Below, in pieces: positions 1-27,586 of a stretch of 64,000 bases of DNA (position 1 is the stretch's first letter; the number at the start of each line of letters is the position of its first letter). A model generated the notes under the pieces. That model was given only the letters and a program-made list of their open reading frames with translations. It had not been told where the DNA came from and searched no databases. The DNA is taken from contig CDROCS010000506.1 in NCBI GenBank assembly GCA_977020255.1, positions 496,001 to 560,000 of the forward strand. Reading direction: 5' to 3'. This DNA comes from Obrimoposthia wandeli. Taxonomy: Eukaryota. The position numbers and the translations under genes are program-made.

Positions 1-446
1 CCAATTTCGCCCGGCTGATTGGCATAATCTACTTTCGCTGCATTTTGCGTGTTATAGGCTTTATTTGGCATCTCACCACGGAATAAATCCATGGTGTTTA
101 ACGTGGTGATAAAGCGAATTAGACGGCGGTCATACTCTTCTTTTTTTATAATACCGAGTTCTAGTGCACTCGTCATACCCGCTAAATACGAAGCCGCATC
201 CCACCATGTTACTGATGGGTAATTATTTACCGCATTCACTAGCCCCGTAGATTCTTGATAATTATTCTCAAAATATTTCCATGCGATACGCGCCATGTCC
301 ATTTCTTTCTCGGTCAAATCACCTTGTCTTGCAGGTGGAATTGACCAATGATCTTTTCTATCAACGATGTCTTCTGAAAAACTATTATATTTACTGCCAC
401 AACCAGAGACCAGTAACCCTGCCAGGCAAACCATCGCTATCCGCAT
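1..446 (-). CDS. DUF3131-family lipoprotein, 3' end truncated by the window edge (absent from the ORF track)
   Basis: Read by hand from the reverse strand: AGGGAG RBS, ATG at 446, MRIAMVCLAGLLVSG-C (lipobox), then MARIAWKYFENNYQESTGLVNAVNNYPSVTWWDAASYLAG...EMPNKAYNT, collinear with the DUF3131 ORF at 471-1787. Confidence 0.85.
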   Translation of the reverse strand, partial: MRIAMVCLAGLLVSGCGSKYNSFSEDIVDRKDHWSIPPARQGDLTEKEMDMARIAWKYFENNYQESTGLVNAVNNYPSVTWWDAASYLAGMTSALELGIIKKEEYDRRLIRFITTLNTMDLFRGEMPNKAYNTQNAAKVDYANQPGEI

Positions 447-470
447 ATAAAACTCCCTGTGATATGCAAA

Positions 471-1787
471 CTATTTCGCACCAACACGTAATAATGTACC
501 ATTTTGAACATAAGCAAGAGACTCTAAGATAATGCCATTGGTATTTGCTGTAATTGCTTTGTTAAGACGGCCATCACTTTCATAACGACCTGAATACCAA
601 CCTTTTTGTGCTGAGTATAGGCTTTTAACATCACCCATTAACAGGCTTGTATACTCAGTATCGTACAAGGCGTACCAACCGAAGGATGCTTTAGTAGATA
701 ATGTCTTTAAATGTGACGCATCTTCACCTGTATCTGAAATTGCATTCCATTCTTTACCGTCAGAAAACACCGTGTTATAAACAAAATAAGGCGCAACATC
801 GACATTATCTTCACTCACAGCAGTTAAGATACCTAAGCGCTCGTAACGGTTTTCTTGCGCTTTATAAACACGATAGGCAAAGATTTCTGAAATACTGTCA
901 GCACCAAATTCTAAACTATCTAAAATATATGACTCACTCACCACGTAGTTATGTGCATGGTACTTAGCCGGATCACGTCTATCTGTTGGAATATCAACAC
1001 CATCAATATTAACCATTTCTAAATAATCAATATATTTCATCGCGTTAAATACATCGAGACCCATTAACGATAACGCTTTAGAGGCATATTCTTCATAGCC
1101 AATACGTCCTTCTTGCACCAGTTCTAAACCACCTGTTTTTGCTGGGCGAGAACCATATAAATAGCCTTTGTCGATCAAGCTGCCAACATGCCAGTGATTC
1201 AATACATCGTTCACTTGCTTGTTATAGTCAGGGTATTGCCAAATAAGAATGTTTAACGGCACCAAAATACGGCCAATATCAATCGCAGACCAACCAATAC
1301 CATCAGCCACAGGGTTATTTGCATAATCCACCATTTCAAGAGTTTTGGTGTTATAAGCTTTGTTTGGTAGCTTGCCTTCGATCAAGGGTAAGCGCGCTAA
1401 TGTGTGTAGCACTTTCTCCATTTTTAAATCAAATTCCGCTTGGCTAACGATATTTAATTTTTCAGCGCCAATAAGCCCCATTAAATAAGACGCAGTATCC
1501 CACATCGTTGTAGAAGGATAGCCATCAACAGAATTTACAAGTCCGGTATTCGGCTGCACATTATTATCAAAATAACGCCAAGCAGTCTTGGCCCACTCAT
1601 ACTCTTCTGCTGTTAAAATACGGCTTTCACGCAGTGGAATAGGCTCTTCCGTGGTAAAAGATAGATTACCTAGTACTTGCGTGTACTCACGTGTTTCAAT
1701 TGTAAAAGCAATGACTAACGCAGTCACTAGACCACCAATAAATACAAAATGGTGACGCGCTTTAATTAAGTTTTGTTTAAACGCCAT
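471..1787 (-). CDS. DUF3131-family protein (putative (alpha/alpha)6 glucanase/transglycosylase), N-terminal membrane anchor
   Basis: AKTAWRYFDNN, TGLVNSVDGYPSTTMWD, LPNKAYNT, GWSAIDIGR, EGRIGYEEY, VSED motifs; start reassigned to MAFKQ (ATG 1787), which overlaps the GT2 stop. Confidence 0.8.
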   Translation of the reverse strand: MAFKQNLIKARHHFVFIGGLVTALVIAFTIETREYTQVLGNLSFTTEEPIPLRESRILTAEEYEWAKTAWRYFDNNVQPNTGLVNSVDGYPSTTMWDTASYLMGLIGAEKLNIVSQAEFDLKMEKVLHTLARLPLIEGKLPNKAYNTKTLEMVDYANNPVADGIGWSAIDIGRILVPLNILIWQYPDYNKQVNDVLNHWHVGSLIDKGYLYGSRPAKTGGLELVQEGRIGYEEYASKALSLMGLDVFNAMKYIDYLEMVNIDGVDIPTDRRDPAKYHAHNYVVSESYILDSLEFGADSISEIFAYRVYKAQENRYERLGILTAVSEDNVDVAPYFVYNTVFSDGKEWNAISDTGEDASHLKTLSTKASFGWYALYDTEYTSLLMGDVKSLYSAQKGWYSGRYESDGRLNKAITANTNGIILESLAYVQNGTLLRVGAK

Positions 1788-3627
1788 ATTCAAATCCCTC
1801 TGATTCTTGTTCTTGTTTTTTTTCTGTTGGTGGAGTCCAAAATGCGGCAGCAATCATGCCCCACATCGCCATCATATTATTCACAATCCAAAAACTATTC
1901 AGTACTAACCCGCCAAACGAGTAATCACCAAAACTGCCCGTTACATAGCTAAACCAGGCAAAACACATACTGAATAAACTTAATACGAACACCCCTATTT
2001 GCGGCGCGACTAACTTCCAAAAAGTACCCGTTTGACGTTCTTTAGGGGTCGTTGGGAAGCTAATTTTACGGCCTCGAAGTACCGTCCATAACGCCCGCAG
2101 ATTAACTGGGAAGAAAGATAAGAAATTGGTTTTACCTTTATAACCAGCTACCCCCCAAGTACCTAACATCATGGCTAGTTCAGCGGTAATAACAAATGGC
2201 AAGAAGTGCATATAGAATGTCGTATCATAAGCACTTACTGGCGCAAGGCTGGTAAGGAAATAAACGATAGGACAAAGTAAGAAAATAATGTTCCATACAG
2301 CCGACAAATTTGACCAGAAACTGGCTAAATACATCGCCTTCTGCTTTAACGACATGCCTTTTTTCAATAACGGATTATCATTCATAAAGATATCAATCGA
2401 ACCACCAGCATATTTGAAACGCTGTACAGTCCAAGTTTGTAAATCCTGTGGCGACAGCATTTTACTTTCCACTTCAGGATGCTGTACTGAACGCCAATTA
2501 CGTTCGGTATCGGAATGCAAAACAATCGAGGTATAGATATCTTCTGATACATGAAATTTATACGGGGTAAAATCGGTATCAAACAAGATCTCTTGGCGTA
2601 AGTTAGCCGAAATATCTTTATCGACTTCTTTCTCTTTGGTTAACTTACGGATCTGCTTTTCAATATCTTCTTGTGACTGACTGATCTGCGCGCTGTAGCT
2701 TCGTAGTGCAGCTTCCATCACGGCTTCACGACGGTGGATAGAACCCGCACCACAACAGAAAGAAGCATTCACCCAGTTACGACGGCGCTGGATCACGTCA
2801 TAAAACATTTGTGGGTCGTTAACAAACGGGTCTTCGCCTAATGTGACAGGTCCATAGCACTTTTCAACTAAACGACCTAACCCATGTCCTACGCGACCCA
2901 TTTTACCTTGTAACCAATCAGGTAAGCGTTGGCCTTCAGGCAAGTCAAAGAACCATTGTGGTGTTTGTACCCATGCCACATCAGGGTCACGAAAGTAACC
3001 GAGAGTGTGTTCTAGTATTGTCGAGAATGGTCGAGTATCAGCGTCACAAATAACGATAAAATCACCATAGCTTTGCTCTAATGCATTTTTAAGGTTACCG
3101 GCTTTAAAACCTTCGTTGTTATCACGGGTAATATATTCAACATTATATTCCGCTGCTAACGCAGCCATCGCTGGACGACGACCGTCATCGAGAATGTATA
3201 TTTTAGTTTCAATTTCAAATGGGTAAGTAATATTTAACGCATCGCGAATACTCAAGCGCACCAATTCTGGGTCTTCATCATAAGTAGGGAAGAAAACATC
3301 AACACTGATTGGTCTATCTTCTTCTGTATCCGTGACACATTCAGCGAGTTTAAATGGCGGAGACTGTTTCGGCTCGTCTTGAGTTTTCCACAAGTTAAAG
3401 GTAAACAATACCGAACCAATAAAAGCACAAGATTCAGCGAATGCTAATGGCAGCGAAAACCACAACGCATCATAATTTAACGCAAAGCTCCAACGCCACC
3501 ACAGATACCACACACCTAGGGTCAGGTTACATGTCGCTAAATATTGATAAGCGAGCTCACGGCTAAAACTATATTCGGATGGTTTTGGCGGCTTACGATG
3601 CTCAAACTCTTTGAAATAAAAATCCAT
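1777..3627 (-). CDS. Processive GT2 glycosyltransferase, cellulose-synthase-like, without PilZ
   Basis: LDDGR, ICDAD (DxD), TPQ, FCCGAG, SED and QRFKY motifs; 2 N-terminal and about 4-5 C-terminal hydrophobic helices; start at MDFYF follows GGAG. Confidence 0.88.
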   Translation of the reverse strand: MDFYFKEFEHRKPPKPSEYSFSRELAYQYLATCNLTLGVWYLWWRWSFALNYDALWFSLPLAFAESCAFIGSVLFTFNLWKTQDEPKQSPPFKLAECVTDTEEDRPISVDVFFPTYDEDPELVRLSIRDALNITYPFEIETKIYILDDGRRPAMAALAAEYNVEYITRDNNEGFKAGNLKNALEQSYGDFIVICDADTRPFSTILEHTLGYFRDPDVAWVQTPQWFFDLPEGQRLPDWLQGKMGRVGHGLGRLVEKCYGPVTLGEDPFVNDPQMFYDVIQRRRNWVNASFCCGAGSIHRREAVMEAALRSYSAQISQSQEDIEKQIRKLTKEKEVDKDISANLRQEILFDTDFTPYKFHVSEDIYTSIVLHSDTERNWRSVQHPEVESKMLSPQDLQTWTVQRFKYAGGSIDIFMNDNPLLKKGMSLKQKAMYLASFWSNLSAVWNIIFLLCPIVYFLTSLAPVSAYDTTFYMHFLPFVITAELAMMLGTWGVAGYKGKTNFLSFFPVNLRALWTVLRGRKISFPTTPKERQTGTFWKLVAPQIGVFVLSLFSMCFAWFSYVTGSFGDYSFGGLVLNSFWIVNNMMAMWGMIAAAFWTPPTEKKQEQESEGFEYGV

Positions 3628-3648
3628 CTTCTTTCGCTCCAAGTAACT

Positions 3649-5352
3649 TTAATTAAAATAGCTATTATGTACAGCTAATAAACCAATTAGACTGGCGTTA
3701 TAATCAATTGCAAATTCATTCACGGCATATGATTTTTCACTGTCCACATAACTCATCATCCCTTCATTTTTCGGGGCTACCCCAGCTTGGGCTTTTTCGT
3801 TAGGCCCACCAACTAAGAAACCAGGTAAGCTAATACCCGTCGATATCCGGTATAAGTGATGCAGATTACGCACCGCATAAGTGCCAGTGTGAGTAACAAA
3901 ACTCATGTTAAATGCGTTAGCACCTAATAAATAATCAATCTGTGACTGCACTACACCACGGTAATTACGCGTCTGTGACGAGGCATCCACACCTGCCATT
4001 AACACGCCAGCCTCAGCGGTCATTTTATTTGACCCCCAAATAAAACGTTGGTTAGCAATGGCAAAAGGCGCTATTGAGGCTTGCTCTGAATAACGTTTGG
4101 CAACCTGCTCAACATCTTTACGTAATTGCGCGGTCAGTTCGCTATCAACAGATTCGATAAGATGAGAGATACCCATTAACGCCGGGTTTTTCCATTCAAA
4201 AATAGCCACAAACTCTTTATCGTATAAATCATCAAATCCAGTTAAGTACTTGCCTTGCTTCGTACTTAAATATAACTCTGCCAGTGCCCATAAACGGTCA
4301 TCTACATCCGTTTCTAATGATGCTTCACTGTCTTCTGGATTTTGCACATAAGGACCTGAACCACTATCGTCACCTTTTTGCCAATCTATATATTGTTCTG
4401 GCTGTTGCTCTAAATAGCGCCAAGCATGAATCGCAGACTTTAAATAATCACGCGCTAAATTTGGGCGCAAAGGTTTCAATACACGAGAGGCGAATGCCAT
4501 CGTTGCTGCAAATTTGGCCGTTTCAGGCGTACTCACACCGTAGATATAGCGAACCTGCTGATCTTGCCAAGGGACTATTTTATCCGGCCATTTAGCCCCT
4601 GATACTTTGCGATAAACAGCGCCATCTTCGCGCTGCATTTTACCTAACCAGTCCAAGCCATATATCGCTTCTTCCAATATGGCTGGTAATGTACTGTCGG
4701 CATGATTGCCAGTCATAAATAACGCTGGCGATTGACTATAAGCTTCCAGTAAACGCGCAACCGTGATCGTGGTCGTCGCAACATATTTACCGTAATCACC
4801 CGCGTCATACCAACCACCCGTCATATCTAATTGCTCTCCCGCTTGATGGTAATCATCACTGCGGAAAATAATTGCATCTTGAACATGGCTTTGTGGTCGA
4901 TTCATACCTGTTGTTTGATCGAAGATTGCGCTGCCTGAACGTTGTAAATACAATGCTTTAACAAGGCGAGCTGCCAGTCCCTGATAAACATTATCGGCAA
5001 TCTGAAACGGTGCAGAGGTCGTCGACTTACTTTGTAGTTGATACCAACCAGGCTGGGTAACATTAGAGAAATTAATTGCTTTAGAGCCAGATTCAATCGT
5101 CACACTGAAAACACCCACCTCATTTTCTTTTGTCTCATTACCTACAAGTGGTTCTGCACCTGCCGTATCCATGGCGACTAAATTGACTAATTCTTCAGAA
5201 GGGTTTAACCAATAGGCTTTTTTATCGCCACTAGGTAGATAACCAAGTTGATTAACAACGAGTTGATTACTGTCTTGCTCGCTCATAGCGGTACTAGAAA
5301 AAGCTAAACTTAATAATGTAACAACGACAATCCTTGCCATAGCTCTTGCCAT
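3649..5352 (-). CDS. GH9 endoglucanase with signal peptide and N-terminal Ig-like domain
   Basis: NQLGY Ig motif, GGWYDAGDYGK, LHH and NEFAIDYNA catalytic motifs. Confidence 0.9.
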   Translation of the reverse strand: MARAMARIVVVTLLSLAFSSTAMSEQDSNQLVVNQLGYLPSGDKKAYWLNPSEELVNLVAMDTAGAEPLVGNETKENEVGVFSVTIESGSKAINFSNVTQPGWYQLQSKSTTSAPFQIADNVYQGLAARLVKALYLQRSGSAIFDQTTGMNRPQSHVQDAIIFRSDDYHQAGEQLDMTGGWYDAGDYGKYVATTTITVARLLEAYSQSPALFMTGNHADSTLPAILEEAIYGLDWLGKMQREDGAVYRKVSGAKWPDKIVPWQDQQVRYIYGVSTPETAKFAATMAFASRVLKPLRPNLARDYLKSAIHAWRYLEQQPEQYIDWQKGDDSGSGPYVQNPEDSEASLETDVDDRLWALAELYLSTKQGKYLTGFDDLYDKEFVAIFEWKNPALMGISHLIESVDSELTAQLRKDVEQVAKRYSEQASIAPFAIANQRFIWGSNKMTAEAGVLMAGVDASSQTRNYRGVVQSQIDYLLGANAFNMSFVTHTGTYAVRNLHHLYRISTGISLPGFLVGGPNEKAQAGVAPKNEGMMSYVDSEKSYAVNEFAIDYNASLIGLLAVHNSYFN

Positions 5353-5361
5353 AGTTATCTC

Positions 5362-7680
5362 CTAACGGTCTTGGGGTAAATAGTCATTTCTACTTACTTC
5401 ATTATCTTGCTGGTCATATAAAATTATCGTCACTGCATCAGATAAACCTGCTAATGACTGTTTATTTAAAATAATACTTGCGGTGTTTGCGTCGATATTG
5501 ATGCTCTGCATACTCCAAGTATCACCATCTTCATTATCTCTAATCAGCATTTTCATATCTTGATAAGCACGTAAACTATCATTGATAACAGTGATAGTTA
5601 TCGACTGACTCGCGCTGCTATTTTCACGTTCTAACACTGCCAATAGCGGCTGGTAAGCACTTTGCATAGCAACAAAACCAGGTTTTGCAATACGATCTAC
5701 ATCAAGTACCGACCAAGTGATTGCATTCCAACTATCGTTAAACATAAATTGATAAATTGCAGCCAATCCTGACCCTTTATTTAATCTTAGTTGCTCGATT
5801 GCCGACTTGGTTATTAATCGTTGATATTCCTGACTATTACTCACGAATTGTGACAGAGATTCACCTTCGTCAATTTTGGCTATTTGTAGGGTTTCACGAG
5901 GTTGGTAATTGTGGTAGCTGAGTTGCTTAATAAGCTTAGCTGAAAGCGGCCATGCAGGCACTTCGTCCAACATGTCAATAACAGCGTTATAACTTGGCAT
6001 TGCTTGCGCACCAAATTCACTGACAATCGCCGTTTTCGGTTTCTGGCTATAATCACTATAATGCCCAGAGTACCAGCCAAGCCAAGGATGTTCAGCAGTA
6101 TAAGATGCCTTACGCACGATCCTGTCATCATTTACAGTAAGCAACTGCTGGTAGACAGCCTCTGTTAACGCGACATTTTTATCTGTTTTATAACTCGGGT
6201 ATTTGTATTGCATCCAAGTTGCATCCCAAGGCGGTTCATTTTGACCGCACCAAAATGCAATAGAGGCATGGTTATATAACATGTCAGTCATATCTTTAAC
6301 TTGTGATACCGCTTCAGCTCTAAATTCAGCGCTATCGCTATAGCCCCATTGCAGTGGGAAATCTTGCCACACGATCATGCCAAGTTTATCCGCTTGCTGA
6401 TAAAATGCTTTTCCAGCTACATGCGCATGTACGCGAATACTGTTGATGTTAGCCTTGCGCATTAGCTTTATATCATTGGCATAATCGAGTTCACTTACCC
6501 CGCCCAACCATTGACTAGCAATATAGTTCGTACCACGAATAAAATAAGCACGGTCATTAATATAGAAAACCCCTTGGCCTTCATCAAAAGCTACTTTTCT
6601 AAAACCGATATTTTGCTTACTTATATCGGATGTTTCATTATTCATGCTTACTTGTACTGATAGCTGGTATAAATTCGGATTGCCCCAGTCCCACGGCCAC
6701 CACAACGCCCGCTTAACTTGTGGTAACTGCCAATCAATAACCTGTTTGCCAGTCACTACTTGTGTGTTCAATTTATAAGTTTCTAGCTCATCACCAAACA
6801 CCTGTGTTTTATCATCAAGATCAAGGTCACCACTGCTATTACTCTGAATTCGAATTAACTTAAACTCTAATGTCACATCACCCGCATACAGGCTATCTAA
6901 CGTAATCGCGACCTGCCCCGCTGTTTTCTGGAGAGCCACATCGAGCACTTCCGCCTTTACCTTAATATTATCAATCGCGATTAAGCCAGTTGTACGTAAT
7001 GCGACATCGCCCCAAATACCACCAGAATTACGATCTTGACCGCGGTCAGACCATGCGCCTCCAGGGCGAGTGTCATGGTGATTAAGAACGCCTTTAATTA
7101 AGGTTTTATTTAAAGACCAATCTTGGGTTAGTGTTTCATTCGGGCTATCCACTAATACTTCTAGTTGATTATCTCCGCCATTAATCGCATTCGATACGTC
7201 TAACGAAAATGGCGCAAAGTAACCTTGATGAGAACCGACATCGATATTGTTTAAACGCACTGTCGCCGCGTAATCGACCGCGGTAAAATCCAGCCAATAA
7301 CGTTTAACTAGATCTGATGTTAAAGATGACGAGAGAGCGACATTTGGCAGTGAAAATTGGCGATGATAAATAGCTTTACCTGCATGATTTACGCCTTCAT
7401 TATACCAATTGTTTGGTACTGAAATGGCAGTGACCACGCCAGAAGCTACGGATTGATTATTGTCGACTTGCGTTTGAGAGTTCTTGAGTTGCGTATTATC
7501 GAGTTGTGTATTGTTGAATTGAGAACTTTTGAGTTGAGTAAACGTCGGGGGGATTATGTCGAACTGCCAATCACCGTTAAGTGATTGGCTATTCGGGTTG
7601 ACATCATGACTGTATTTAGATGTACTGCAAGAAGTAACTAACAAGATGTTCAACAAAATAAATACAGTTTTTATGTTCAC
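5362..7680 (-). CDS. GH2 glycoside hydrolase (beta-mannosidase/glucuronidase-like) lipoprotein
   Basis: GTG start at 7680 after GAGGA gives MNIKTVFILLNILLVTS-C (lipobox); IRGTNY, RVHAH, WCGQNE (acid/base) and VSEFG (nucleophile) motifs. Confidence 0.85.
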   Translation of the reverse strand: MNIKTVFILLNILLVTSCSTSKYSHDVNPNSQSLNGDWQFDIIPPTFTQLKSSQFNNTQLDNTQLKNSQTQVDNNQSVASGVVTAISVPNNWYNEGVNHAGKAIYHRQFSLPNVALSSSLTSDLVKRYWLDFTAVDYAATVRLNNIDVGSHQGYFAPFSLDVSNAINGGDNQLEVLVDSPNETLTQDWSLNKTLIKGVLNHHDTRPGGAWSDRGQDRNSGGIWGDVALRTTGLIAIDNIKVKAEVLDVALQKTAGQVAITLDSLYAGDVTLEFKLIRIQSNSSGDLDLDDKTQVFGDELETYKLNTQVVTGKQVIDWQLPQVKRALWWPWDWGNPNLYQLSVQVSMNNETSDISKQNIGFRKVAFDEGQGVFYINDRAYFIRGTNYIASQWLGGVSELDYANDIKLMRKANINSIRVHAHVAGKAFYQQADKLGMIVWQDFPLQWGYSDSAEFRAEAVSQVKDMTDMLYNHASIAFWCGQNEPPWDATWMQYKYPSYKTDKNVALTEAVYQQLLTVNDDRIVRKASYTAEHPWLGWYSGHYSDYSQKPKTAIVSEFGAQAMPSYNAVIDMLDEVPAWPLSAKLIKQLSYHNYQPRETLQIAKIDEGESLSQFVSNSQEYQRLITKSAIEQLRLNKGSGLAAIYQFMFNDSWNAITWSVLDVDRIAKPGFVAMQSAYQPLLAVLERENSSASQSITITVINDSLRAYQDMKMLIRDNEDGDTWSMQSINIDANTASIILNKQSLAGLSDAVTIILYDQQDNEVSRNDYLPQDR

Positions 7681-7690
7681 AATGTTCCTC

Positions 7691-9392: not shown

Positions 9393-9404
9393 TTCAAACC
9401 TCCA

Positions 9405-12291: not shown

Positions 12292-12448
12292 GGAGGATAT
12301 TAGAGGGATATTTTAAATACCTCACACTTTGACTTTTATGTTGAAAATATCCGCTACGATAGAAAAATCCCTAACTATGTTTAGTAATGATGATCAAATT
12401 TATATACCACATTGGGTAGACATTATTGAACAAATAGTAGGAGTTCAT

Positions 12449-15400: not shown

Positions 15401-17311
15401 GAAGATGGCAATAACACCATCAATTTAGGTGAAGGCACAAACACATTATACGGTGGTGCTGGTGCAGATACTGTCATCTCAGGCAGTGGTAACGATCAAC
15501 TCTCCGGATCTGGCGGAGACGATAACCTTTCAGGTGGTGCGGGTAGCGATCAACTCGAAGGTGGTGATGGCAGCGATATCTTATCGGGGGATACTGGTGA
15601 GGACACCCTCTTCGGTAATGACGGTAACGATACCTTACTTGGTGGTGATGGCGCAGATAAACTGTTTGCTGGTGCGGGTGATGACCAATTATTTGGTGGT
15701 GCTGGCGCCGATGAATTACATGCTAGCAGTGGTAACAACACCCTATCTGGTGGTGATGACAATGACACCCTTTATGGCGCAGCAGGTAATGACATTCTTA
15801 GAGGTGATGATGGTGATGACCGACTCGAAGGCTTTGACGGTAACGATACGTTAGAAGGCGGTGCTGGCGATGATAGCTTAAACGCTAGCAGTGGTAATAA
15901 CCAACTCGATGGCGGTATCGGTAATGACGAACTTTCGAGTGGCGATGGAGATGATACGCTCCTCGGTGGTGAAGGTAATGATACGCTCGATGCCGGGGCT
16001 GGTCATAACAACATATCTGGTGGTTTAGGTAACGACACTATCACCGCAGGCGCTGGCAATGATGTTATTAGCGGCGACTCGGGGAACGATACGATTAATG
16101 CCGGTGATGGTGATAACCAAGTTACTGGCGGCATAGGCAGTGATGTCATTAACGCGGGAACGGGTAACGATGCCATTAGTGGCGGTGATGACAATGACCA
16201 AATAACAGTGAGCGGTGGTAACAACCAAATCCTGGGTGATGCAGGTGATGATCAAATCAGAACTGGCGCAGGTAGTGACCAACTATTCGGTGGTGAAGGT
16301 GCGGATAAACTTTACGCCGGTAGTGGTGACGATCAGCTTGAAGGTGGTTCTGGTAACGATAGGCTTTATGGCCAAAATGATAATGACCAATTACTCGGTG
16401 GTCTTGGCGATGATTACCTTAGTGGTGGCTCTGGTGATGACTCCCTACTGGGTGGCGAAGGTAATGATTACATTCGCGGTGACAGTGGTAACGACACACT
16501 ATACGGTGGCGTTGGTGATGACACTGTTCGCGGCGGCAATAATGATGATATCGTCTTTGGTGAGTCCGGTAATGATACCTTAACTGGCGACAACGGTAAT
16601 GATCAGCTCTTCGGCGACATTGGCGACGACAGCCTGCAAGGTGGTTCAGGGGAAGATATTTTATCTGGTGGCGCAGACAACGATAACCTAGCTGGCGGTT
16701 CTGGTAATGATAATCTAGATGGCGGCCTAGGTGACGATCAATTAACCGGTGACAGTGGTGATGATATCCTCTTCGGCCAAGCGGGTAATGACACCTTAGA
16801 TGGCGGCACAGGTAGCGATCAATTATTCGCAGGCGCAGGTAATGATACCTTGATCTTTGATATCACTGAAACAACGAATACCGATGGGGCAACCGTACAC
16901 TTTAGTGGTGGTGCTGGCTTTGACGTATTAGCCGTTGGCAGTGATTCAGATAGCCAAATTATTGATATGACACAAACAGCCTTCCAAGAAATTGAAGGGG
17001 TGGTCGTCAATGCGAGCGATGCTCAACTGAAGATCTCTCTTGATAAAGTGCTGCTTAATGACACAGCTGAAGTGAGCAATAGTCAATTTGTTTGTACAGG
17101 CGCTGATAAGCTAGATTTAAACGGTTTCAACTGGGAAGTATCAAGTAATAATGCCACGCTAAATGATGACTTACGCGATGCCTACGAAGCAAGTAACATC
17201 AATACTGACTCACTATTTGGTTACACTTTTGCCAATGATGAAGGTAAAGAAGTGACAATCTGGAGTGACAGTGAGCAAGAGAATATTAGCTTTAACGGTG
17301 CAGATGTTTAG
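12449..17311 (+). CDS. Giant RTX (GGxGxD nonapeptide) calcium-binding protein, T1SS substrate
   Basis: AGGAG RBS before MQGTNSDD (12449); GGxGxDxLx repeats almost continuous from about 13040 to 16860; acidic C-terminal secretion region; no Sec signal. Confidence 0.9.
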
Positions 17312-17361
17312 CCACTAATAAGCAAATAACGTGAAGTCATAAACCAATAACTGAAGCAGTA

Positions 17362-17396
17362 AAAAAAGGCGGTGATATTTAATCACCGCCTTTTTT
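17362..17396. terminator. Bidirectional intrinsic terminator
   Basis: AAAAAAGGCGGTGAT-ATTTA-ATCACCGCCTTTTTT between convergent genes. Confidence 0.9.
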
Positions 17397-17558
17397 ATCT
17401 CTAAAATATAAACCACAGCTGCGAGAATAAACTCGGCAGGTATAAAAACGACAGACATAAAAAAACACACAGTACAGCTTTAGTTAAAAGCAATACTATG
17501 TGTTTCAAGCAGTTTAAGTAGACTTAACTATCTAGTTTCATCATAAGTTAAACCTAAG

Positions 17559-18395
17559 TTAACTATTCAGACATAGCTTTCTATTCTTAGCAGTAATCAA
17601 ACTATCATTGGAAATAACATAAAAGAAGTAATCATCATCCATTTCATTAGTCTGAATATAAGTACGGATATGATTTAGAATACTTTTAGCCTCGTTGTAA
17701 CTATACAAGTAGCCCTTATCACACTCATTCACCACGTCTAAATCGACCTGTAAGCGATCAAATTGACTCATTAGATCATCTACCCGAGTCACATGTGCTG
17801 CTTGCTGAGCTTCACTGGCATAGCGTACTTCGAACTCAGCCTTCTGTTTTTCCCACGCAGCTACATCACCCACTTTCGCCAATACCTGTGCCTCTTGCTG
17901 CTGTAAGCGCGCAGATTCTAAGTTCAGTTGGTTACGGATAATCGCCAAACCAGCTTGCTCTGCGATCAAGATTTGTTGCTGTTCGGCAATACTCGATGCT
18001 AATTCTTTCTGAAAAGAGCGGCGTAAATCTTTTATATTTTGATCTTTACGTTTCAGCTGTTTACTTTGATACTCTGATTTTAACTGTAATTCATCAATCA
18101 CTTTTTGCTGCGTAGCAAGTTCCTGCTTTTGTATTAACAGCATTTTTTCCAACGTAACATATTCCGTTGACATTATTTGTGCATCGCCTTGTTGATTAGC
18201 TTTCAATGAATCAATCGACACTTGCTGCTCGGTAATAATATTGTTTTTAGTGGCGAGTAAAGCCACATCATTATGACGCTCTGTATACTGCCACGCTGTC
18301 GTGCCAACTAACCCCAACAATATGACCATCACGGTACCAGCGAAAACCAATGCTTGGTTCATTGGCATTGATAAACGATTCTGCTTTTGTTTCAT
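17559..18395 (-). CDS. Hypothetical single-pass membrane coiled-coil protein
   Basis: One N-terminal TM helix, long Q/K/E/L heptad region, short C-terminal domain with 2 Cys; GGGGAG RBS. Confidence 0.75.
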   Translation of the reverse strand: MKQKQNRLSMPMNQALVFAGTVMVILLGLVGTTAWQYTERHNDVALLATKNNIITEQQVSIDSLKANQQGDAQIMSTEYVTLEKMLLIQKQELATQQKVIDELQLKSEYQSKQLKRKDQNIKDLRRSFQKELASSIAEQQQILIAEQAGLAIIRNQLNLESARLQQQEAQVLAKVGDVAAWEKQKAEFEVRYASEAQQAAHVTRVDDLMSQFDRLQVDLDVVNECDKGYLYSYNEAKSILNHIRTYIQTNEMDDDYFFYVISNDSLITAKNRKLCLNS

Positions 18396-18424
18396 CTCAA
18401 CTCCCCCCATTAAGCTACCCTCTA

Positions 18425-18664
18425 CTAAGCGATATATAGTTGTTTCGTTTTACACTGCGGACAAAAATATGACTTAATGTGAATGCTAGATTGGCAATTT
18501 TGACAGATCATATGTTTACGATCTTTGCTTAAATACATACAAATAACACCCACTGGCCCCAGCACATAACCGAGTAAAATACCGGCCACTAAATTACCTT
18601 TTTGATAGCCCATATAAGTCGACAACAAGAAGAAAAATAAATAAAACCCTAACCAAAATAACAT
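18425..18664 (-). CDS. Small membrane protein with C-terminal zinc ribbon
   Basis: Two hydrophobic segments then CQNC...CPQC. Confidence 0.75.
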   Translation of the reverse strand: MLFWLGFYLFFFLLSTYMGYQKGNLVAGILLGYVLGPVGVICMYLSKDRKHMICQNCQSSIHIKSYFCPQCKTKQLYIA

Positions 18665-18679
18665 GCTACATCCTTATAA

Positions 18680-19975
18680 TTATGTTTCTCTAAACGCACG
18701 GTTATACGACGTAAATAAAGGCGCGGTGAAATAATCCCACAACGTACGATCTTCTAATAAAATGAGTACTTCTGTGGGCATACCCGGGTACAAATTAATG
18801 TGAGTAAGCGCCTTTAATTCCGCGCTATTTAATTTTACTTTGATCCGGTAGCCTGCTTTGCCGTCATTGTTTTGTGGGATCCGGTCCGCCGCAACATACA
18901 CGACCTCCCCTGTCACCGGGGCTGTATTACGAATACTGTAAGCAGAAAGCCTGACTTTAGCTTTAAGACCCTGCCTAACCATATCAATATCTTCTGACTT
19001 AACGATAGCATCGACAATTAATTCATCGCCTTCAGGTACAATTTCCATCAGCACTGCTCCAGCGTTAACAACACCACCAACACTATGCACATTCAAACCA
19101 ACCACAGTACCTGCATGCTCACTGCGAATTGTCACCTTGGAACGCGCATCTCGCGCTACATTTAATGCTTGCAACACATCCCGAAGTTCCTTGGATAAGC
19201 TGTCCATTTTCATTGTATATTGCTGCTTTAGCTCTACGTTTTCAGTTTTAAAATCTTGTTCTAATGACGCTGCTTGACGGTTTAATACTCTGCTCTCTGA
19301 ATCAAGCCCTGCTCTTTTAGCTAGCACTTCGGCCTTATTACGTTGCAGCGCCATCACCCGTGTTTTGGATACATAACCTTTATCTAATAACCCTGATAAC
19401 ATCTCTAATTCTTGATCAATTAATACCAACTGGTTATCAACGGCAATAATTTGATATTGAGCGCCTCTAGACTTCTCTTCCAACAAGGTTTTTCGTTGTG
19501 AAAATTGCTCAATACGCAATTCATTATGTAGCACCTCTTGCTGATATTGTAATTGTTGACTGGCAATGATATTACTGTATTCAATACTTTCGACATCTTG
19601 AATAGTAGCGTCGCTCCACACCACGTTATCGTGCCCATTCAATGCAGCAGATAAACGATCATGCTGCGCTTGCAGAAATGTTGCACGCTGTTGTAATCGA
19701 CGAAAATCAGCATCCACTTGGCCACTTGCAAGCTCTAGTAACATATCACCAGCCTGTACTTTTTGCCCCTCAACAACATGTATCGCCTTCACCCAACCAC
19801 CGTCTAAGTGCTGGATTTTTTTACGCTGAGACTCGACAATAATCGTTCCAGGGGCAATAGCGGCAGAGCTTAAATGCATCGAGGTCGACCAAGCAATAAA
19901 ACCACCGATCGTAATAACAATACTAAGGCAACCCGCAATGATAAGCCCACGTGTATCAAATAGCTGTTTATCCAT
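18680..19975 (-). CDS. Type I secretion membrane fusion protein (HlyD/PrtE family)
   Basis: TM anchor, IQHLDGGWVKAIHVVEGQKV, IRSEHAGTV, LYPGMPTEV. Confidence 0.93.
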   Translation of the reverse strand: MDKQLFDTRGLIIAGCLSIVITIGGFIAWSTSMHLSSAAIAPGTIIVESQRKKIQHLDGGWVKAIHVVEGQKVQAGDMLLELASGQVDADFRRLQQRATFLQAQHDRLSAALNGHDNVVWSDATIQDVESIEYSNIIASQQLQYQQEVLHNELRIEQFSQRKTLLEEKSRGAQYQIIAVDNQLVLIDQELEMLSGLLDKGYVSKTRVMALQRNKAEVLAKRAGLDSESRVLNRQAASLEQDFKTENVELKQQYTMKMDSLSKELRDVLQALNVARDARSKVTIRSEHAGTVVGLNVHSVGGVVNAGAVLMEIVPEGDELIVDAIVKSEDIDMVRQGLKAKVRLSAYSIRNTAPVTGEVVYVAADRIPQNNDGKAGYRIKVKLNSAELKALTHINLYPGMPTEVLILLEDRTLWDYFTAPLFTSYNRAFRET

Positions 19976-21704
19976 GCTGTTTCACCTTCTTAACTTCACT
20001 ATCAACGGTAGACACACCATTCATTGCACCAAGGAATTGCTCACATGTCCCCGCTTTTTCAACCTTACCGTCTTTAAGCACCACGACCCAGTCCATCTGC
20101 CTTAAAAACCCAGGTCGGTGGCTAATCATCACTACTGTTATGCTATTTTCTTTACAGTATTGCAGTACAATTGACAGGGCGACTTCACCTTCAGGATCTA
20201 AATTAGAGTTGGGTTCATCAAGGACGAGTAATCTAGGATTAGAAAAAATAGCTCTAGCCAAGCCAATACGTTGTTTTTGACCGCCAGACAGCTGCAAACC
20301 GCCTTCACCAAGGTAAGTATCATAGCCTTTGGGTAATGAAATAATCAGTTCATGAATACAGGCAAGTTGCGCGGCATGAATTATTTTTTCAGCTGGTGCA
20401 TTCGAGTAACGGCAAATATTTTCAGCCACAGTGCCCGCGAGTAAACCCACTTCTTGTGGTAGAAAACCTATGTGTTCACCAATTTCATTTTCGGGCCATA
20501 ATTCCATCGCAGCGCCGTCAATTTTAACCGCCCCTACCGATGGTTTGTGGATCCCCATGATTAAAGCAGCAAGCGTTGATTTACCTGAACCAGTATTACC
20601 CATGATTGCGAGTGCTTGCCCTGCTCCGAGTTTAAAATTAATGTTTTGTAATACTGCGCGCTGTTGATTAGGAAACTTTAACCCCACATTTTCTAACTTC
20701 AATTCGCCTTTTGGTACTGGCAAGCTCGTTTTAAACTCGTCATCCAGCGCACCTTCATTTAATAATTGTAAACGTTTGAATGCATTCCAAGCGCTGTACC
20801 AGCCTTTCCATCCGGCAACCGCTTGTTCAAAAGGAGATAATAAACGCCCCATAATAATCGAACTGGCAATAATAGACCCAGCACCCAGCTGTTGCTGTAA
20901 TACCAGCATGACACCGACAGTCAAGATAGCCACTTGTAACAATGTTCTAAAGTAACGACTAACAGCTAATAGCTGCCCTGTTCTTGCGTTTACTTGCCAT
21001 TGCAGTGCTAACACTTGCTGGTTTTTATCGTGCCACACCTTGCCTATATTATCGGCCATGCCCATCGCGCGTAACATCGGCGCATTTCTTAAAAAGTCAT
21101 TAAGTTCCATACTGGTTTTCATGGCTAATTCTTGCGACTCGCCGCTCGGCTTACGTGCTGCATACATCATCAGCAATGCCAATACTACAAACACTGCACT
21201 ACCAATAAGGGCGACGATACCAAGATAGGGGTGCAGCATGAATAGAATAACCAGAAATACGGCAATCCAAGGAATATCAAAAATGGCAGATGTTGAAGGG
21301 CTAACTAAAAAATTCCTTAGTTCGGTTAAATCTTGTAAACCTTGTTTGTGAATGCAGTTATGCTTAGATGACTGACGAATACTGTCGGCAAGTAATAATG
21401 GACTGAGCGTCAGATCCAGGTTCAACCCCGTTTTTTGTAACAGTAGTGTACGAATATGTTCGATGACAGCTTGGGCTGTTAATAATATAACCGCGATGGC
21501 TAATAAGGCGTATAGCGTATCTAAACTGGCGCTACTCAATACCCGATCAAACAACTGCAAGCTATATAAAGGTAAGGTTAATACCAAAAAATTAATAGCA
21601 AGGCTAAATATAACCACGTAAACAAGATTTTTCTTGCACACACTAAACGCGCTTTGTAGCTCATTTTTCAACAAGGTAGATATCCTTAAAAGCGTAAGTC
21701 CCAA
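19968..21704 (-). CDS. Type I secretion ABC transporter (PrtD/AprD family), canonical ATPase
   Basis: GNTGSGKST, FLPQE, LSGGQKQR, LVLDEP, ISHR all intact; exact start uncertain (TTG). Confidence 0.93.
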   Translation of the reverse strand: MGLTLLRISTLLKNELQSAFSVCKKNLVYVVIFSLAINFLVLTLPLYSLQLFDRVLSSASLDTLYALLAIAVILLTAQAVIEHIRTLLLQKTGLNLDLTLSPLLLADSIRQSSKHNCIHKQGLQDLTELRNFLVSPSTSAIFDIPWIAVFLVILFMLHPYLGIVALIGSAVFVVLALLMMYAARKPSGESQELAMKTSMELNDFLRNAPMLRAMGMADNIGKVWHDKNQQVLALQWQVNARTGQLLAVSRYFRTLLQVAILTVGVMLVLQQQLGAGSIIASSIIMGRLLSPFEQAVAGWKGWYSAWNAFKRLQLLNEGALDDEFKTSLPVPKGELKLENVGLKFPNQQRAVLQNINFKLGAGQALAIMGNTGSGKSTLAALIMGIHKPSVGAVKIDGAAMELWPENEIGEHIGFLPQEVGLLAGTVAENICRYSNAPAEKIIHAAQLACIHELIISLPKGYDTYLGEGGLQLSGGQKQRIGLARAIFSNPRLLVLDEPNSNLDPEGEVALSIVLQYCKENSITVVMISHRPGFLRQMDWVVVLKDGKVEKAGTCEQFLGAMNGVSTVDSEVKKVKQHG

Positions 21705-21909: not shown

Positions 21910-23496
21910 GTGATGATCTCAATAGCGATCTTATCGATCGTGAGCTTTACTAGCATTGCAGAACCGTCACCAACCCAACAAGATAACGAACCTGAAAAAT
22001 TAAGTTTTTATGGGGGCAGAGCTGTACCTCATGTACCTGTAAGTGATTCACAGACTCAAACATCATCATCAGGCGCTAGTGAAAACTCAAACAAGCGCGG
22101 GTCACAACGCCGAGCAATACACCCTACTGATACCGAAGACAGTAATACGGAAAGTGCGCCTCCCCAACTAACTAAACAAAGCCAAAAAAAGTTAAGCGTA
22201 AATAATGCTATAAAAATAACAGTTCAATCACCTGAAAAGGTTATTTTAAAAAACAATGGAATAAAAGTAACTTCGCTGTCTGACGATACAACAATAACCA
22301 CCAAACAGCTGACGCGAGAAGATTTAGTATTAGCCAAAAAAGCGCAGTATTATATCGAGCGTAATTGGAATAAAAACACCGGTTTAATTGATTCTGTACA
22401 AGGTTATCATCACGCAACACTTTGGGATATGGCCAGTGGTATTGGCGCCATTCTCGCGTTAGAAAAACTTGAGTTAATCAGCAGTTTTGATGCGTCATCT
22501 CGACTCACTAAAACCTTAATAACCCTGTTTAAACTACCACTGTATAACAACGAATTACCGAATCGAGAGTACAATACTCAATCAGGCTTACCGTCGGGTT
22601 CTCTCAGTAAAACAGCTTCTAACGGTAACGGTTGGTCGGCATTAGATATTGGCCGCCTGTTAATTTGGTTAGAAATAACCAAACAATACAAGCCAGAATT
22701 AACGCCGCTAATTACGTTAATTACCAAAAAGTGGAAGTTTGAACGAACAGTGTTTAATCAGACTCTGTATGGTGAACTGAAACAGAAACGCAGCACTTCA
22801 TATCGTCAAGAAGGTCGCTTAGGCTATTTACAATATGCAGCGCAAGGTTATCAATTCTCGGGACTTGATGTGGCAAATGCATTTAAACAAGATAATACCA
22901 CCGAGATTATGCAAGAAGGCATCCCCCTTCATATCGACCAACGTAACCTGCCTTTTTTTACTAGCGACAGTTATGTACTCCAAGCGATTGAACTCGGTAG
23001 CCCTATTGTGTGGTGGAATCAATTAGAAAACGTTTACCAATTACATAAAACGCATTATGCAGACACCAAAATACTGCGGATATTTGCTGAAGATGCGATG
23101 AGCAAAGCACCGTGGTTTTCTTATAACAATATTAATATCTATGGTAAATCATGGTTAAGTACCAATACCCGAGGCAAATCGATTACTAATCCGCAAATAT
23201 TTAGTAATAAAGTCGCCTTTGCTTTTAGTGTGCTTTTTGATGATGATTTTAGCCAACAACTCGCTACTCAAGTGCTTTCTAATAGCTTATCTAAGCGCTC
23301 AGTACCGACTGGGTTATATCAAGACAGTTCGACCAATACCGCTTACAACATCAATACTAACTCATTAATATTAGTCGCATTATGGTTTAAATCCCGTAAT
23401 AACACGCCGATTTATCAACCCGCAGATAGCCGCTTGAATAAAATAGTGAATACGACCGTTAATAAAAACAATAGTAACGACTTAACAGCACTTTAA
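21910..23496 (+). CDS. DUF3131-family protein, third paralogue, with signal peptide and disordered N-terminal linker
   Basis: TGLIDSVQGYHHATLWD, LPNREYNT, GWSALDIGR, EGRLGYLQY. Confidence 0.8.
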   Translation: MMISIAILSIVSFTSIAEPSPTQQDNEPEKLSFYGGRAVPHVPVSDSQTQTSSSGASENSNKRGSQRRAIHPTDTEDSNTESAPPQLTKQSQKKLSVNNAIKITVQSPEKVILKNNGIKVTSLSDDTTITTKQLTREDLVLAKKAQYYIERNWNKNTGLIDSVQGYHHATLWDMASGIGAILALEKLELISSFDASSRLTKTLITLFKLPLYNNELPNREYNTQSGLPSGSLSKTASNGNGWSALDIGRLLIWLEITKQYKPELTPLITLITKKWKFERTVFNQTLYGELKQKRSTSYRQEGRLGYLQYAAQGYQFSGLDVANAFKQDNTTEIMQEGIPLHIDQRNLPFFTSDSYVLQAIELGSPIVWWNQLENVYQLHKTHYADTKILRIFAEDAMSKAPWFSYNNINIYGKSWLSTNTRGKSITNPQIFSNKVAFAFSVLFDDDFSQQLATQVLSNSLSKRSVPTGLYQDSSTNTAYNINTNSLILVALWFKSRNNTPIYQPADSRLNKIVNTTVNKNNSNDLTAL

Positions 23497-23614
23497 CTGC
23501 ACTAATAGAAAATAATGATCCATCTATAAATAGATCATCAAGTGTACTAGGGCCAAAGAAGTTAACCACTGCTATACTTTTTTTGTATCCCCCCAACACG
23601 CTTATTGGAACCCC

Positions 23615-24421
23615 ATGTCCCTGCCACTTTTTAAACACAAAAAACTACCTTTAGCACTCTTGCTTTGTAGCGCGACGCTGCCAATGTCGAGCCTTGCCAA
23701 AGATGTTGATTTTTCTGATCCGCTCACTGAACTTAACTCAGCATTATGGTGGAAATCAGATGGCTGGAGCAATGGTTTTCCTTTCACTAATAGTTGGGAA
23801 GGTGAAGCTGTTAGCTTTAGTGATGCAGGTATGGCACTTAGCTTAGCGCCAACAAATTATGCTGATACTGGCTATCCATATCAGTCGGGGGAATTTCGTA
23901 GTCAAGGGTTTTATGGCTATGGTTGTTTTGAAATTGAAATGAAACCAGTAGCAAAACCTGGGATTGTTTCTTCCTTTTTCCTCTTTGCAGGACCTTATGA
24001 TAAACCAGAGAAAGGTAATGGCAAACATAACGAAATTGATATTGAATTTTTAGGCAAAGATACCAGCGTGGTACAAATTAACTTTTGGACCAATGATGAC
24101 CGCTATGAATTGGCACATGAACATATTATTCCACTGGGTTTTGATGCAGCCGAAGGTTTCCATCGCTATGGTATTGAATGGCGTAGAAAGTCAATATCTT
24201 GGTATGTAGATGGTCAGTTAGTGCATAAAGTAAAACATGATACCAGCGATCCTATCCCACAAATATCAAGCAGCAAGCTGAGAGTGATGGCTAACTTATG
24301 GGCAACGGATAACCGTATTTCTGATTGGGCAGGTTATTTTGAAGCAGGCGACTTCCCTATCACCGCTCATTACCGTAATGCTAGCTTTAAGAGCCGCTCT
24401 ACTTGTAAAAGCGATGAGTGA
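23615..24421 (+). CDS. GH16 beta-glucanase, lichenase-like, secreted
   Basis: SGEFRS..FYGYG.FEIEMKP...GIVSSFF, NEIDIEFLGKD (ExDxE), LGFDAA..FH.Y; signal peptide. Confidence 0.9.
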   Translation: MSLPLFKHKKLPLALLLCSATLPMSSLAKDVDFSDPLTELNSALWWKSDGWSNGFPFTNSWEGEAVSFSDAGMALSLAPTNYADTGYPYQSGEFRSQGFYGYGCFEIEMKPVAKPGIVSSFFLFAGPYDKPEKGNGKHNEIDIEFLGKDTSVVQINFWTNDDRYELAHEHIIPLGFDAAEGFHRYGIEWRRKSISWYVDGQLVHKVKHDTSDPIPQISSSKLRVMANLWATDNRISDWAGYFEAGDFPITAHYRNASFKSRSTCKSDE

Positions 24422-27585: not shown

Positions 27586-27586
27586 G

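Follow-up and report, generated by a model that had tools for sequence, protein, structure and literature searches.

The locus studied here raises two questions: what its genes make, and how their activity is controlled. The window, that is, the whole stretch of 64,000 nucleotides analyzed (positions 496,001 to 560,000 of contig CDROCS010000506.1, assembly GCA_977020255.1, filed under Obrimoposthia wandeli), carries in its first 24,421 nucleotides a set of genes that an earlier note had described as a candidate glucan synthesis and export system switched by serine phosphorylation instead of cyclic di-GMP (c-di-GMP). Our analysis indicates that the cluster probably encodes a synthase-dependent β-glucan system of an uncharacterised kind, gated after translation by a partner switch. 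The best reading of the encoded proteins is that the product would be a periplasmic or secreted β-glucan, possibly cyclic. Literature searches returned three passing mentions only and no characterised locus with this gene set, which agrees with the novelty claimed in that note.

Pfam matches and open reading frame (ORF) coordinates bore out the nine co-oriented genes that overlap or lie at most 24 nt apart (Table 1). They encode a receiver-linked PP2C phosphatase (REC-PP2C), a STAS protein, a CugP-type nucleotidyltransferase, an RsbW-like kinase, a GH2 and a GH9 protein, a GT2 synthase and two DUF3131 proteins, with the CugP-type gene nested between those for STAS and RsbW. Adjacent genes overlap or are separated by 6–24 nt, as judged both from the ORF coordinates and from the gene calls of a 94%-identical relative (locus L081). 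The ATG near 10948 is the likely true start of REC-PP2C and that at 3627 the likely start of the GT2, and orthologues of about 110 aa indicate a start near 9737 for STAS. The window GT2 shares 85% identity with its counterparts in P. profundum and P. frigidiphilum and 94% with a protein from a marine metagenome; by these identities the operon is that of a Photobacterium, and an exact-sequence lookup of the window GT2 returned no record. A cyanobacterial origin, first considered in view of the GC content and of CugP, was rejected since the GT2 has its best matches in Photobacterium. In L081 the full unit consists of REC-PP2C, STAS, nucleotidyltransferase, RsbW, GH2, GH9, GT2, three DUF3131 genes, a gene for a 351-aa protein and one for a 419-aa GT2-like protein, so that, if the genome matches L081, the window truncates the operon at its left edge. 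The Pfam scan of the window covered the listed ORFs of at least 100–120 aa, minus short ones nested in or overlapping called genes. Among these ORFs no PilZ, GGDEF, EAL, BcsB, BcsC, BcsZ, Wzx, Wzy or OpgG was found, as the earlier note had stated for all of these but EAL, and neither Pfam nor NCBIfam gave a match in the window to an OpgH-type GT2 or to GH186 (OpgG/OpgD).

The gene set is co-conserved far beyond chance, including through rearrangements. In a scan of GTDB species representatives at least 581 genomes encoded a relative of the GT2. We compared 83 loci, comprising the best 80 GTDB loci with 10-kb flanks and three metagenome loci (L081–L083), whose GT2 orthologues show 58–94% identity. 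Several loci stop at contig ends and the component counts are therefore lower bounds. The GT2 was present in 83/83 loci, STAS and the first DUF3131 copy in 80 each, RsbW in 79, REC-PP2C in 77 and CugP in 68, which is the co-occurrence of GT2, DUF3131, STAS and CugP that the earlier note had proposed as a check; the lack of co-conservation that would have refuted its proposal is clearly not what the loci show. The second and third DUF3131 copies were detected in 64 and 61 loci, the outer-membrane barrel in 55, the 419-aa glycosyltransferase in 53, the 351-aa protein in 51, GH2 in 39, GH9 in 29, the RTX protein in 16 (Photobacterium 3, Vibrio 11, Shewanella 2) and GH16 in 13 (12 of these in Vibrio). 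Carriers were found in Photobacterium, Vibrio, Aliivibrio, Thaumasiovibrio, Shewanella, Ferrimonas, Thiothrix-like bacteria, Leucothrix, Methylobacillus, Paracoccus and several metagenome-assembled genomes (MAGs), so that the set spans Gamma-, Beta- and Alphaproteobacteria as well as one MAG labelled Deltaproteobacteria. In Aliivibrio the regulatory-plus-CugP module is inverted and located downstream of the DUF3131 genes, with linkage retained.

By these comparisons the core comprises the GT2 and DUF3131 together with the partner switch and the barrel, to which CugP is usually added. Within the fetched flanks CugP was absent from Leucothrix, from the enterobacterial version described below and from 7 of the 15 Thiothrix-like loci (8 carry it). 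RTX genes were absent near the cluster in Aliivibrio, Ferrimonas, the Thiothrix-like loci, Methylobacillus and the enterobacterial versions; the RTX protein and its type I secretion system (T1SS) are a neighbouring module outside the core, which apart from Vibrionaceae occurs only in two Shewanella loci. GH9 and GH16 are lineage-specific, GH16 chiefly in Vibrio, where it lies on the same strand downstream of the DUF3131 genes, and GH2 is variable but recurrent in Enterobacterales. The proposal that positions 1 to 24,421 form one system is supported in part; since RTX/T1SS, GH16 and GH9 are not conserved, the block mixes the core with its neighbours, and it is also cut at the left edge.

As for the substrate, the 'CugP-like' label given earlier to the nucleotidyltransferase proved apt: the closest solved structure is the UTP-glucose-1-phosphate uridylyltransferase 8x7s (E 1.4e-123, residues 1–367), while GalU-type and GDP-mannose enzymes score E 1e-29 or weaker. 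The similarity to 8x7s makes UDP-glucose the very probable donor and a glucan the very probable product. A regulatory tail on CugP was considered and dropped, because the C-terminal extension of the window protein is unconserved among orthologues.

The GT2 aligns with BcsA through the motifs DDG, KAGN, DAD, QTPQ, FCCGAGS (FFCGS in BcsA), SED (TED), QRFKY (QRGRW) and the gating loop FPTTPK (FAVTAK). It departs from the BcsA signature QxxRW, with Arg replaced by Lys and the acceptor-stacking Trp by Tyr. At least 74 of the 83 orthologues have QRFKY, as do the enterobacterial members. The sequence stops after the last transmembrane helix, and no PilZ match was obtained in Pfam or NCBIfam. Two extra cytosolic inserts are present (about residues 235–274 and 311–364). 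The second, which is helical, sits between the FFCGS-like and TED-like motifs, where plant CesA proteins have their class-specific region, and is a candidate docking site for STAS/RsbW or for oligomerisation.

The strongest pointer to the kind of glucan came from DUF3131. The AlphaFold2 (AF2) model of copy 1, an (α/α)6 barrel, is confident (pLDDT 93.9, pTM 0.89). In Foldseek its top 20 matches were all β-1,2-glucan-acting enzymes, with BcsZ-type GH8 lower down. The top VIA-align match was the GH189 cyclisation domain of a cyclic β-1,2-glucan synthase (Cgs), 8wy1 (Z 35.9, root-mean-square deviation 2.7 Å, 346 aa), followed by Agrobacterium Cgs (Z 32.3), GH144 (about 32), the new β-1,2-glucanase families 8xul, 8xuk and 8xuj (28–30) and GH162 (24); every other (α/α)6 enzyme scored Z 21.8 or less, with the GH8 enzyme CelA at about 20. 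A sequence relationship was also detectable: the DUF3131 profile matched the TiCGS cyclisation domain 8wy1 with E 5.9e-6 and Agrobacterium Cgs with E 0.04, with only the N-terminal ~90 residues aligning. By its model DUF3131 is thus related in fold to GH189, and among the enzymes compared its fold is closest to members of the SGL clan. We take BMEI1837 to be the cgs gene of Brucella. RefSeq labels the product of BMEI1837 as a DUF3131 protein (PMC6382750). Single-sequence searches of the PDB with four DUF3131 paralogues gave almost no matches and missed 8xuj and 8xuk, so that the β-1,2-glucanases of Photobacterium and Endozoicomonas whose structures were recently solved (PMC12102758) were not among the matches; an identity of DUF3131 with the published PgSGL1-3/EeSGL1 enzymes (PMC12102758) was rejected for this reason, the relation being visible only at the profile and fold level.

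Invariant or near-invariant acidic residues of DUF3131 are D171, E227, D270, E294, D298, E327 and E404, together with many aromatic residues. The three tandem paralogues retain these positions, the only common change in the third copy of the relatives being E327 to D, and by this conservation all three look catalytically competent. A pseudoenzyme nature of the third paralogue was rejected on the same grounds, as judged from the relatives' copies. The distal paralogue, encoded outside the operon, departs from the tandem copies at D298, Q312, R315 and E404.

Predicted targeting places all glycan-processing parts on the periplasmic side: DUF3131 copy 1, which begins before the GT2 gene has ended, is tethered by an N-terminal membrane anchor, lipoboxes occur in copies 2 and 3 as well as in GH2, and Sec signals occur in GH9, GH16, the barrel and the 351-aa protein. 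In L081 the orthologue of copy 2 is a 461-aa protein with DUF3131. The nearest PDB entries to GH9 are endo-β-1,4-glucanases (3x17, 2.7e-87; BoGH9A, 5e-48), and GH2 belongs to a β-mannosidase-like subfamily (nearest entry the β-mannosidase 5n6u, 1.6e-33). The barrel, a conserved companion of the system, has as Atlas neighbours outer-membrane barrels of the OmpG/KdgM type.

A version of the set is found in Enterobacterales, on a conjugative plasmid of Salmonella Rubislaw (L085) and on the megaplasmid pDSJ10 of Pantoea stewartii DC283 (L084), where it is arranged in two divergent operons. One encodes OpgC, a barrel homologue (37% identity, E 1e-43), REC-PP2C (a full-length homologue, E 4e-65), STAS and RsbW, and the other encodes the GT2 (55% identity, with QRFKY), three DUF3131 proteins, a globin, a hybrid sensor-regulator and GH2 (38% identity). 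The barrel homologue adjoins OpgC in both the Salmonella and the Pantoea cluster, and the OpgC acyltransferase within the enterobacterial cluster also appears in published data (PMC3401170, PMC12974863). The cluster of K. pneumoniae lies in an accessory block for which an association with an ecological axis is reported (PMC12974863). The system is mobile, occurring on plasmids, in Salmonella SGI3 and in the Klebsiella accessory block. The globin gene lies directly upstream of that for the hybrid sensor-regulator (about 890 aa), which suggests that the REC-PP2C phosphatase takes its input from the sensing of a gas, O2 or NO. The site between the phosphatase and kinase genes that STAS occupies in the Salmonella plasmid holds an IS66 element in P. 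stewartii DC283, whose record has no annotated STAS gene.

Both the kinship of DUF3131 and the presence of OpgC speak for a β-1,2-glucan, and we consider β-1,2 the most likely single linkage, at somewhat less than an even chance. Of the two product options raised earlier, a mixed-linkage exopolysaccharide and a cyclic or branched periplasmic glucan, the latter gains support from the closeness of DUF3131 to GH189 (compare Cgs). The chief competitor is a cellulose-like (β-1,4) or mixed-linkage exopolysaccharide and biofilm-matrix system, in which the GT2 would be a variant cellulose synthase, GH9 would take the role of BcsZ or KORRIGAN, DUF3131 and the barrel would replace BcsB and BcsC, and the RTX/T1SS of Vibrionaceae would add a protein matrix partner. 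BcsA proteins are indeed the closest characterised relatives of the GT2, with all BcsA motifs aligning, and this proposal also draws on the endo-β-1,4-glucanase affinity of GH9, on GH16 in Vibrio operons, on the 16 loci with adjacent RTX/T1SS and on the BcsZ-type GH8 among the lower structural matches of DUF3131. GH9, GH16 and RTX are lineage-specific, however, whereas DUF3131 is universal, and DUF3131 scores Z 28–36 against β-1,2-glucan enzymes, far above its scores for other (α/α)6 enzymes including GH8. Almost all members have another residue in place of the acceptor-stacking Trp of QxxRW, and BcsB, BcsC, a tetratricopeptide repeat (TPR) porin and BcsZ (GH8) were not found in the scanned window ORFs or in the gene lists of L081–L085. 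The conserved barrel is small, of OmpG/KdgM size, and suits oligosaccharides rather than a polymer, and the enterobacterial OpgC points to periplasmic glucans. We regard a cellulose-like system as rather unlikely, yet as the likeliest of the rivals.

The abundance of secreted or lipoprotein GH-like proteins (GH2, GH9, GH16 and four DUF3131), together with a porin-like barrel and with the β-1,2-glucanases encoded by Photobacterium (PMC12102758), could also be read as a cluster for the degradation and uptake of environmental β-glucans, with GT2 and CugP unrelated or minor. This is very improbable. The conserved set contains no sugar importer, kinase or phosphorylase in the maps of L081–L083, L084 and L085; its two universal enzymes are a processive synthase and the DUF3131 protein encoded directly after it, which overlaps the end of the synthase gene in the window and its close relatives; and a dedicated UDP-glucose pyrophosphorylase is a biosynthetic feature.

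Turning to control, the cluster combines genes for a STAS protein whose Ser can be phosphorylated, for a Ser kinase of the GHKL type and for a PPM/PP2C phosphatase, which is the composition of a partner switch. REC-PP2C has its receiver Asp in the context LSDWMMP, the STAS orthologues conserve FMDSSGLGA, in which DSSG is the phosphorylatable motif, and RsbW orthologues conserve the N-box (E..NN..EHAY) and the G-boxes. From this co-conservation and the intact motifs we infer switching by Ser phosphorylation. The earlier claim of such a switch in place of c-di-GMP thus holds for the genes, their motifs and the absence of PilZ; the switching itself is an inference, and the principle has precedents.

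Canonical RsbW/SpoIIAB proteins are anti-sigma factors and the STAS and kinase motifs of this cluster are canonical, so that the kinase might instead sequester a sigma factor encoded elsewhere that drives the operon or a wider regulon, without direct gating of the synthase. The window even holds an extracytoplasmic function (ECF) sigma factor with a ChrR-like anti-sigma factor, but this sigma has its own ChrR partner and the pair is self-contained. No sigma gene was present in the cluster maps inspected (the window operon, L001, L081–L083 and the two plasmid records, which cover three proteobacterial classes and differing layouts), and the synthase has lost PilZ without another visible gate. 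Moreover, sigma-independent partner switches controlling polysaccharide output are documented: a preprint on Anabaena HenR/All4160 describes one acting on a polysaccharide enzyme and discusses the Vibrio fischeri Syp, Sinorhizobium and Nostoc cases (10.64898/2026.04.08.717354). We consider a purely transcriptional switch improbable. The SypE/SypA and HenR/All4160 precedents also mean that the regulatory principle is not new. As the GT2 has lost PilZ and kept the gating loop, we propose gating at the protein level by the partner switch. Leucothrix, several Thiothrix-like and the enterobacterial loci keep the switch beside the GT2 without CugP, which makes the synthase a more likely target than CugP.

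In the mechanism that we favour, post-translational gating of a β-glucan synthase, the CugP-type enzyme would supply UDP-glucose to the BcsA-like GT2, which would polymerise a β-glucan and thread the chain through the inner membrane into the periplasm. There the chain would be cut, transferred or cyclised by the anchored DUF3131 protein, whose translation would be coupled to that of the synthase, and by its two lipoprotein paralogues, and the small OmpG/KdgM-like barrel would pass oligo- or cyclic glucans through the outer membrane, with GH2, GH9 and GH16 as presumed lineage-specific trimming enzymes. A histidine kinase would act on REC-PP2C, the phosphatase would dephosphorylate STAS and the RsbW-like kinase would re-phosphorylate it; unphosphorylated STAS or the freed kinase would then act on the synthase, or with lower likelihood on CugP, and the switch would take over the part that the PilZ/c-di-GMP gate plays in cellulose synthase. 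By analogy with osmoregulated periplasmic glucans (OPGs) and cyclic glucans, the most likely role would be osmoadaptation or envelope/host interaction. A DUF3131 module (swp_2164-2170) belongs to a salt-shock network of Shewanella piezotolerans (PMC8371737), and this module and the enterobacterial OpgC hint at an OPG-like role. A more specific proposal, which we hold tentatively and which seems doubtful as a whole, is a third, unrecognised route to β-1,2-glucans, possibly cyclic, in Proteobacteria. It would combine a GT2 with a remodelled acceptor site (QRFKY) that makes and exports the chain, free-standing periplasmic GH189-like enzymes that cyclise or resize it, a small dedicated porin that releases it and a switch that binds directly to the synthase in place of PilZ/c-di-GMP.

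Periplasmic and cyclic β-glucans are virulence, symbiosis and osmoprotection factors. To our knowledge only three biosynthetic architectures exist for them, OpgGH, Cgs and NdvB, and this cluster would be the fourth. The known systems follow a template of a processive glycosyltransferase plus a glucanase-like transglycosylase (Cgs, GT84+GH189+GH94; NdvB, GT2+GH17; OpgH with OpgG/D, GH186) (PMC11842490, PMC10237404). With Cgs the system shares a processive glucosyltransferase and a GH189-type (α/α)6 domain, the closest to DUF3131 by sequence and structure. Cgs is, however, one giant protein at the cytoplasmic face, with GT84, protein priming, length control by GH94 and a separate ABC exporter, whereas here there are a BcsA-type GT2 translocase, three separate periplasmic or lipoprotein GH189-like enzymes, no GH94 and a partner switch. 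The BcsA-BcsB(-BcsC-BcsZ) system is alike in GT2 fold class, motif set, gating loop F-x-(V/T)-T-x-K and transmembrane channel region; it differs from the present one in QRFKY, the lack of PilZ, the two cytosolic inserts, the lack of a detected BcsB, BcsC or GH8 BcsZ and, presumably, regulation by Ser phosphorylation. In OpgH/OpgG/OpgD an inner-membrane GT2 likewise exports a glucan that periplasmic glucanase-like enzymes process, and OpgC is shared with the enterobacterial version only; in contrast, no OpgH-type GT2 or GH186 is present here, the periplasmic enzymes are of another fold family, and the barrel and the partner switch are not OPG features. In NdvB of Pseudomonas and Bradyrhizobium, too, a BcsA-like GT2 works together with a transglycosylase on the periplasmic side, by which the growing chain is cyclised (PMC10237404). 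It differs in that its GH17 domain, a TIM barrel, is fused in the same polypeptide, its linkages are β-1,3 and its product is a cyclic β-1,3-glucan, and a partner switch is lacking. SypE/SypA (Vibrio fischeri Syp) and HenR/All4160 (Anabaena Hep layer) share a REC-linked PP2C, STAS and an RsbW-type kinase without a dedicated sigma factor; here the three switch proteins are separate, their genes surround that for the UDP-glucose pyrophosphorylase, and they are tied to a synthase-type GT2. The Syp and Hep pathways are of the Wzx/Wzy type or involve a STAS-glycosyltransferase fusion.

Relatives of the GT2 occur in species-level genomes that include Vibrionaceae, Shewanella and Thiothrix, and the system is mobile in Salmonella, Klebsiella pneumoniae and Pantoea stewartii. 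If the proposal of a β-1,2 route is true, the system could, being mobile, have a bearing on how pathogens and symbionts adapt to osmolarity and associate with their hosts, and it could name the biological source of the marine β-1,2-glucans degraded by the recently discovered Photobacterium β-1,2-glucanases. The cluster raises testable questions about the function of the DUF3131 family, the gating of BcsA-like enzymes without c-di-GMP and the effect of QxxRW to QRFKY on linkage chemistry.

Several observations weigh against the favoured mechanism. DUF3131 is only 10–16% identical to characterised SGL-clan enzymes and may differ from them in specificity. The GH9 of endo-β-1,4-glucanase type lies beside the synthase in 29 loci, and this enzyme and the GH16 of Vibrio would fit β-1,4 or mixed-linkage products better than a pure β-1,2-glucan. 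The sequence of the GT2 cannot reveal the linkage, and its nearest characterised relative is cellulose synthase. As its AF2 model is poor (pLDDT 56, from a 14-sequence alignment) and was not used for fold searches, the channel and inserts were judged from sequence only. A weak PLA1 match, below the cut-off, means that the barrel could be an OMPLA-like enzyme and not a pore, and a distant sigma factor is a possible target of the switch. Finally, near-identical low-depth contigs spanning the operon in one marine metatranscriptome are compatible with transcription but could be carried-over DNA.

Table 1. Features of the window, with positions, strand and the matches or signals on which their naming is based.
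Feature	Position	Strand	Matches and signals
DUF3131 paralogue 2, N-terminal part	1-470 (or 1-446)	-	Translation; LVSGC lipobox; gene leaves window at left edge
DUF3131 paralogue 1, membrane anchor + predicted periplasmic (α/α)6 barrel	471-1853 (or 471-1790)	-	Pfam DUF3131 1.1e-144
BcsA-like processive GT2 synthase/translocase	1777-3642	-	Pfam GT2; PDB BcsA 9fmv 4.4e-38
GH9 endoglucanase, secreted, N-terminal Ig-like domain	3649-5352	-	Pfam GH9 1.8e-74 + CelD_N; signal peptide
GH2 lipoprotein	5362-7743	-	Four GH2 Pfam domains; lipobox LLVTSC
RsbW/SpoIIAB-like Ser kinase, anti-sigma-type GHKL ATPase	7691-8167	-	Pfam HATPase_c_2 7.6e-18
CugP-type UDP-glucose pyrophosphorylase	8121-9392	-	Pfam NTP_transferase 2e-52 + LbH
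STAS single-domain protein, anti-anti-sigma type	9405-9767	-	Pfam STAS 1.1e-16; TIGR00377 above its cut-off
REC-PP2C phosphatase	9689-10963	-	Pfam Response_reg 6.8e-22 + SpoIIE (PP2C/PPM) 2.4e-38
Outer-membrane β-barrel, internally duplicated	11190-12200	+	Signal peptide; divergent from operon
RTX protein, 50 RTX stretches	12329-17311	+	Pfam
283-aa ORF	within 12329-21704		Alongside RTX/T1SS genes
HlyD	18680-19975	-	Pfam
ABC exporter	19968-21704	-	Pfam
Distal divergent DUF3131 paralogue	21910-23496	+	Pfam DUF3131 2.1e-87
GH16 glucanase, secreted	23615-24421	+	Pfam GH16 1e-35; signal peptide
Second type I secretion unit with adjoining adhesin	25399-42413		
ABC protein of second unit	25399-27585		
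ABC protein of second unit	27587-29197		
TolC-like outer-membrane efflux protein (OEP)	29194-30591		
748-aa protein of second unit	30591-32837		Only C-terminal receiver domain recognised
HlyD of second unit	32815-34143		
2655-aa adhesin	34446-42413		Cadherin/Big_9 repeats, DUF642/CBM-like modules; adjoins second unit
ECF sigma factor	45941-46570		
ECF sigma factor + ChrR-type cupin anti-sigma pair	45941-47244		
Block from ECF sigma factor to DUF3833	45941-53896		

The flanks of the operon are by Pfam as first described, with a duplicated barrel whose halves are 58% identical (over 65 aa, E 1e-28), an RTX protein with its T1SS, a further DUF3131 and a GH16. The distal DUF3131 is a probable accessory member of the system. 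It is present in 12/12 Shewanella loci and adjoins the barrel gene in those with printed maps. There (for instance L017:18642-21400) the barrel gene comes directly after the distal DUF3131, whereas in the window the RTX/T1SS block separates the two. Possibly the barrel and the distal DUF3131 genes are an older pair into which the RTX module was inserted.

Two further genes recur at the end of the operon. The one after the third DUF3131 in Vibrionaceae and Shewanella encodes a signal-peptide protein of 351–365 aa (L081:15980-17035; L001:16024-17121) with no Pfam match and only weak TPR-like look-alikes, which may serve as a scaffold in the periplasm, in analogy to the TPR region of BcsC. The 419-aa cytosolic GT2-like protein closes the operon (L081:17139-18398; L001:17311-18588). 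Its Atlas look-alikes include enzymes of the glucosyl-3-phosphoglycerate/mannosylglycerate synthase type and dolichyl-phosphate glucosyltransferase-like folds. Enzymes of the former type make compatible solutes or primers, and conceivable products of the 419-aa protein are a primer, a branch or an osmolyte. In L001 a TRAP transporter gene follows the cluster. Beyond the operon, L081–L083 have a small opposite-strand ORF and then an OmpR-type two-component pair. The small ORF (114 aa in the 94%-identical relative) had no Pfam match even at E 10 and was present in only 3/83 loci; an identity as a stand-alone PilZ protein was rejected on this copy, and we treated the ORF as unrelated to the system. 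Promoter and terminator scans gave counts at or below shuffle level, with 11 terminator-like sites in positions 1 to 12,400 against 9.6 expected from shuffles and thus no enrichment.

To the right of the cluster the window carries a second type I secretion unit and the adjoining adhesin gene. The ECF sigma and ChrR-type genes are followed by SnoaL, short-chain dehydrogenase/reductase (SDR), amine oxidase, DUF1365, cyclopropane-fatty-acid synthase, DUF2878, chalcone-isomerase-like and DUF3833 genes, and this block looks like a regulon of the singlet-oxygen or photo-oxidative stress type. The remaining Pfam content of the window includes housekeeping genes.

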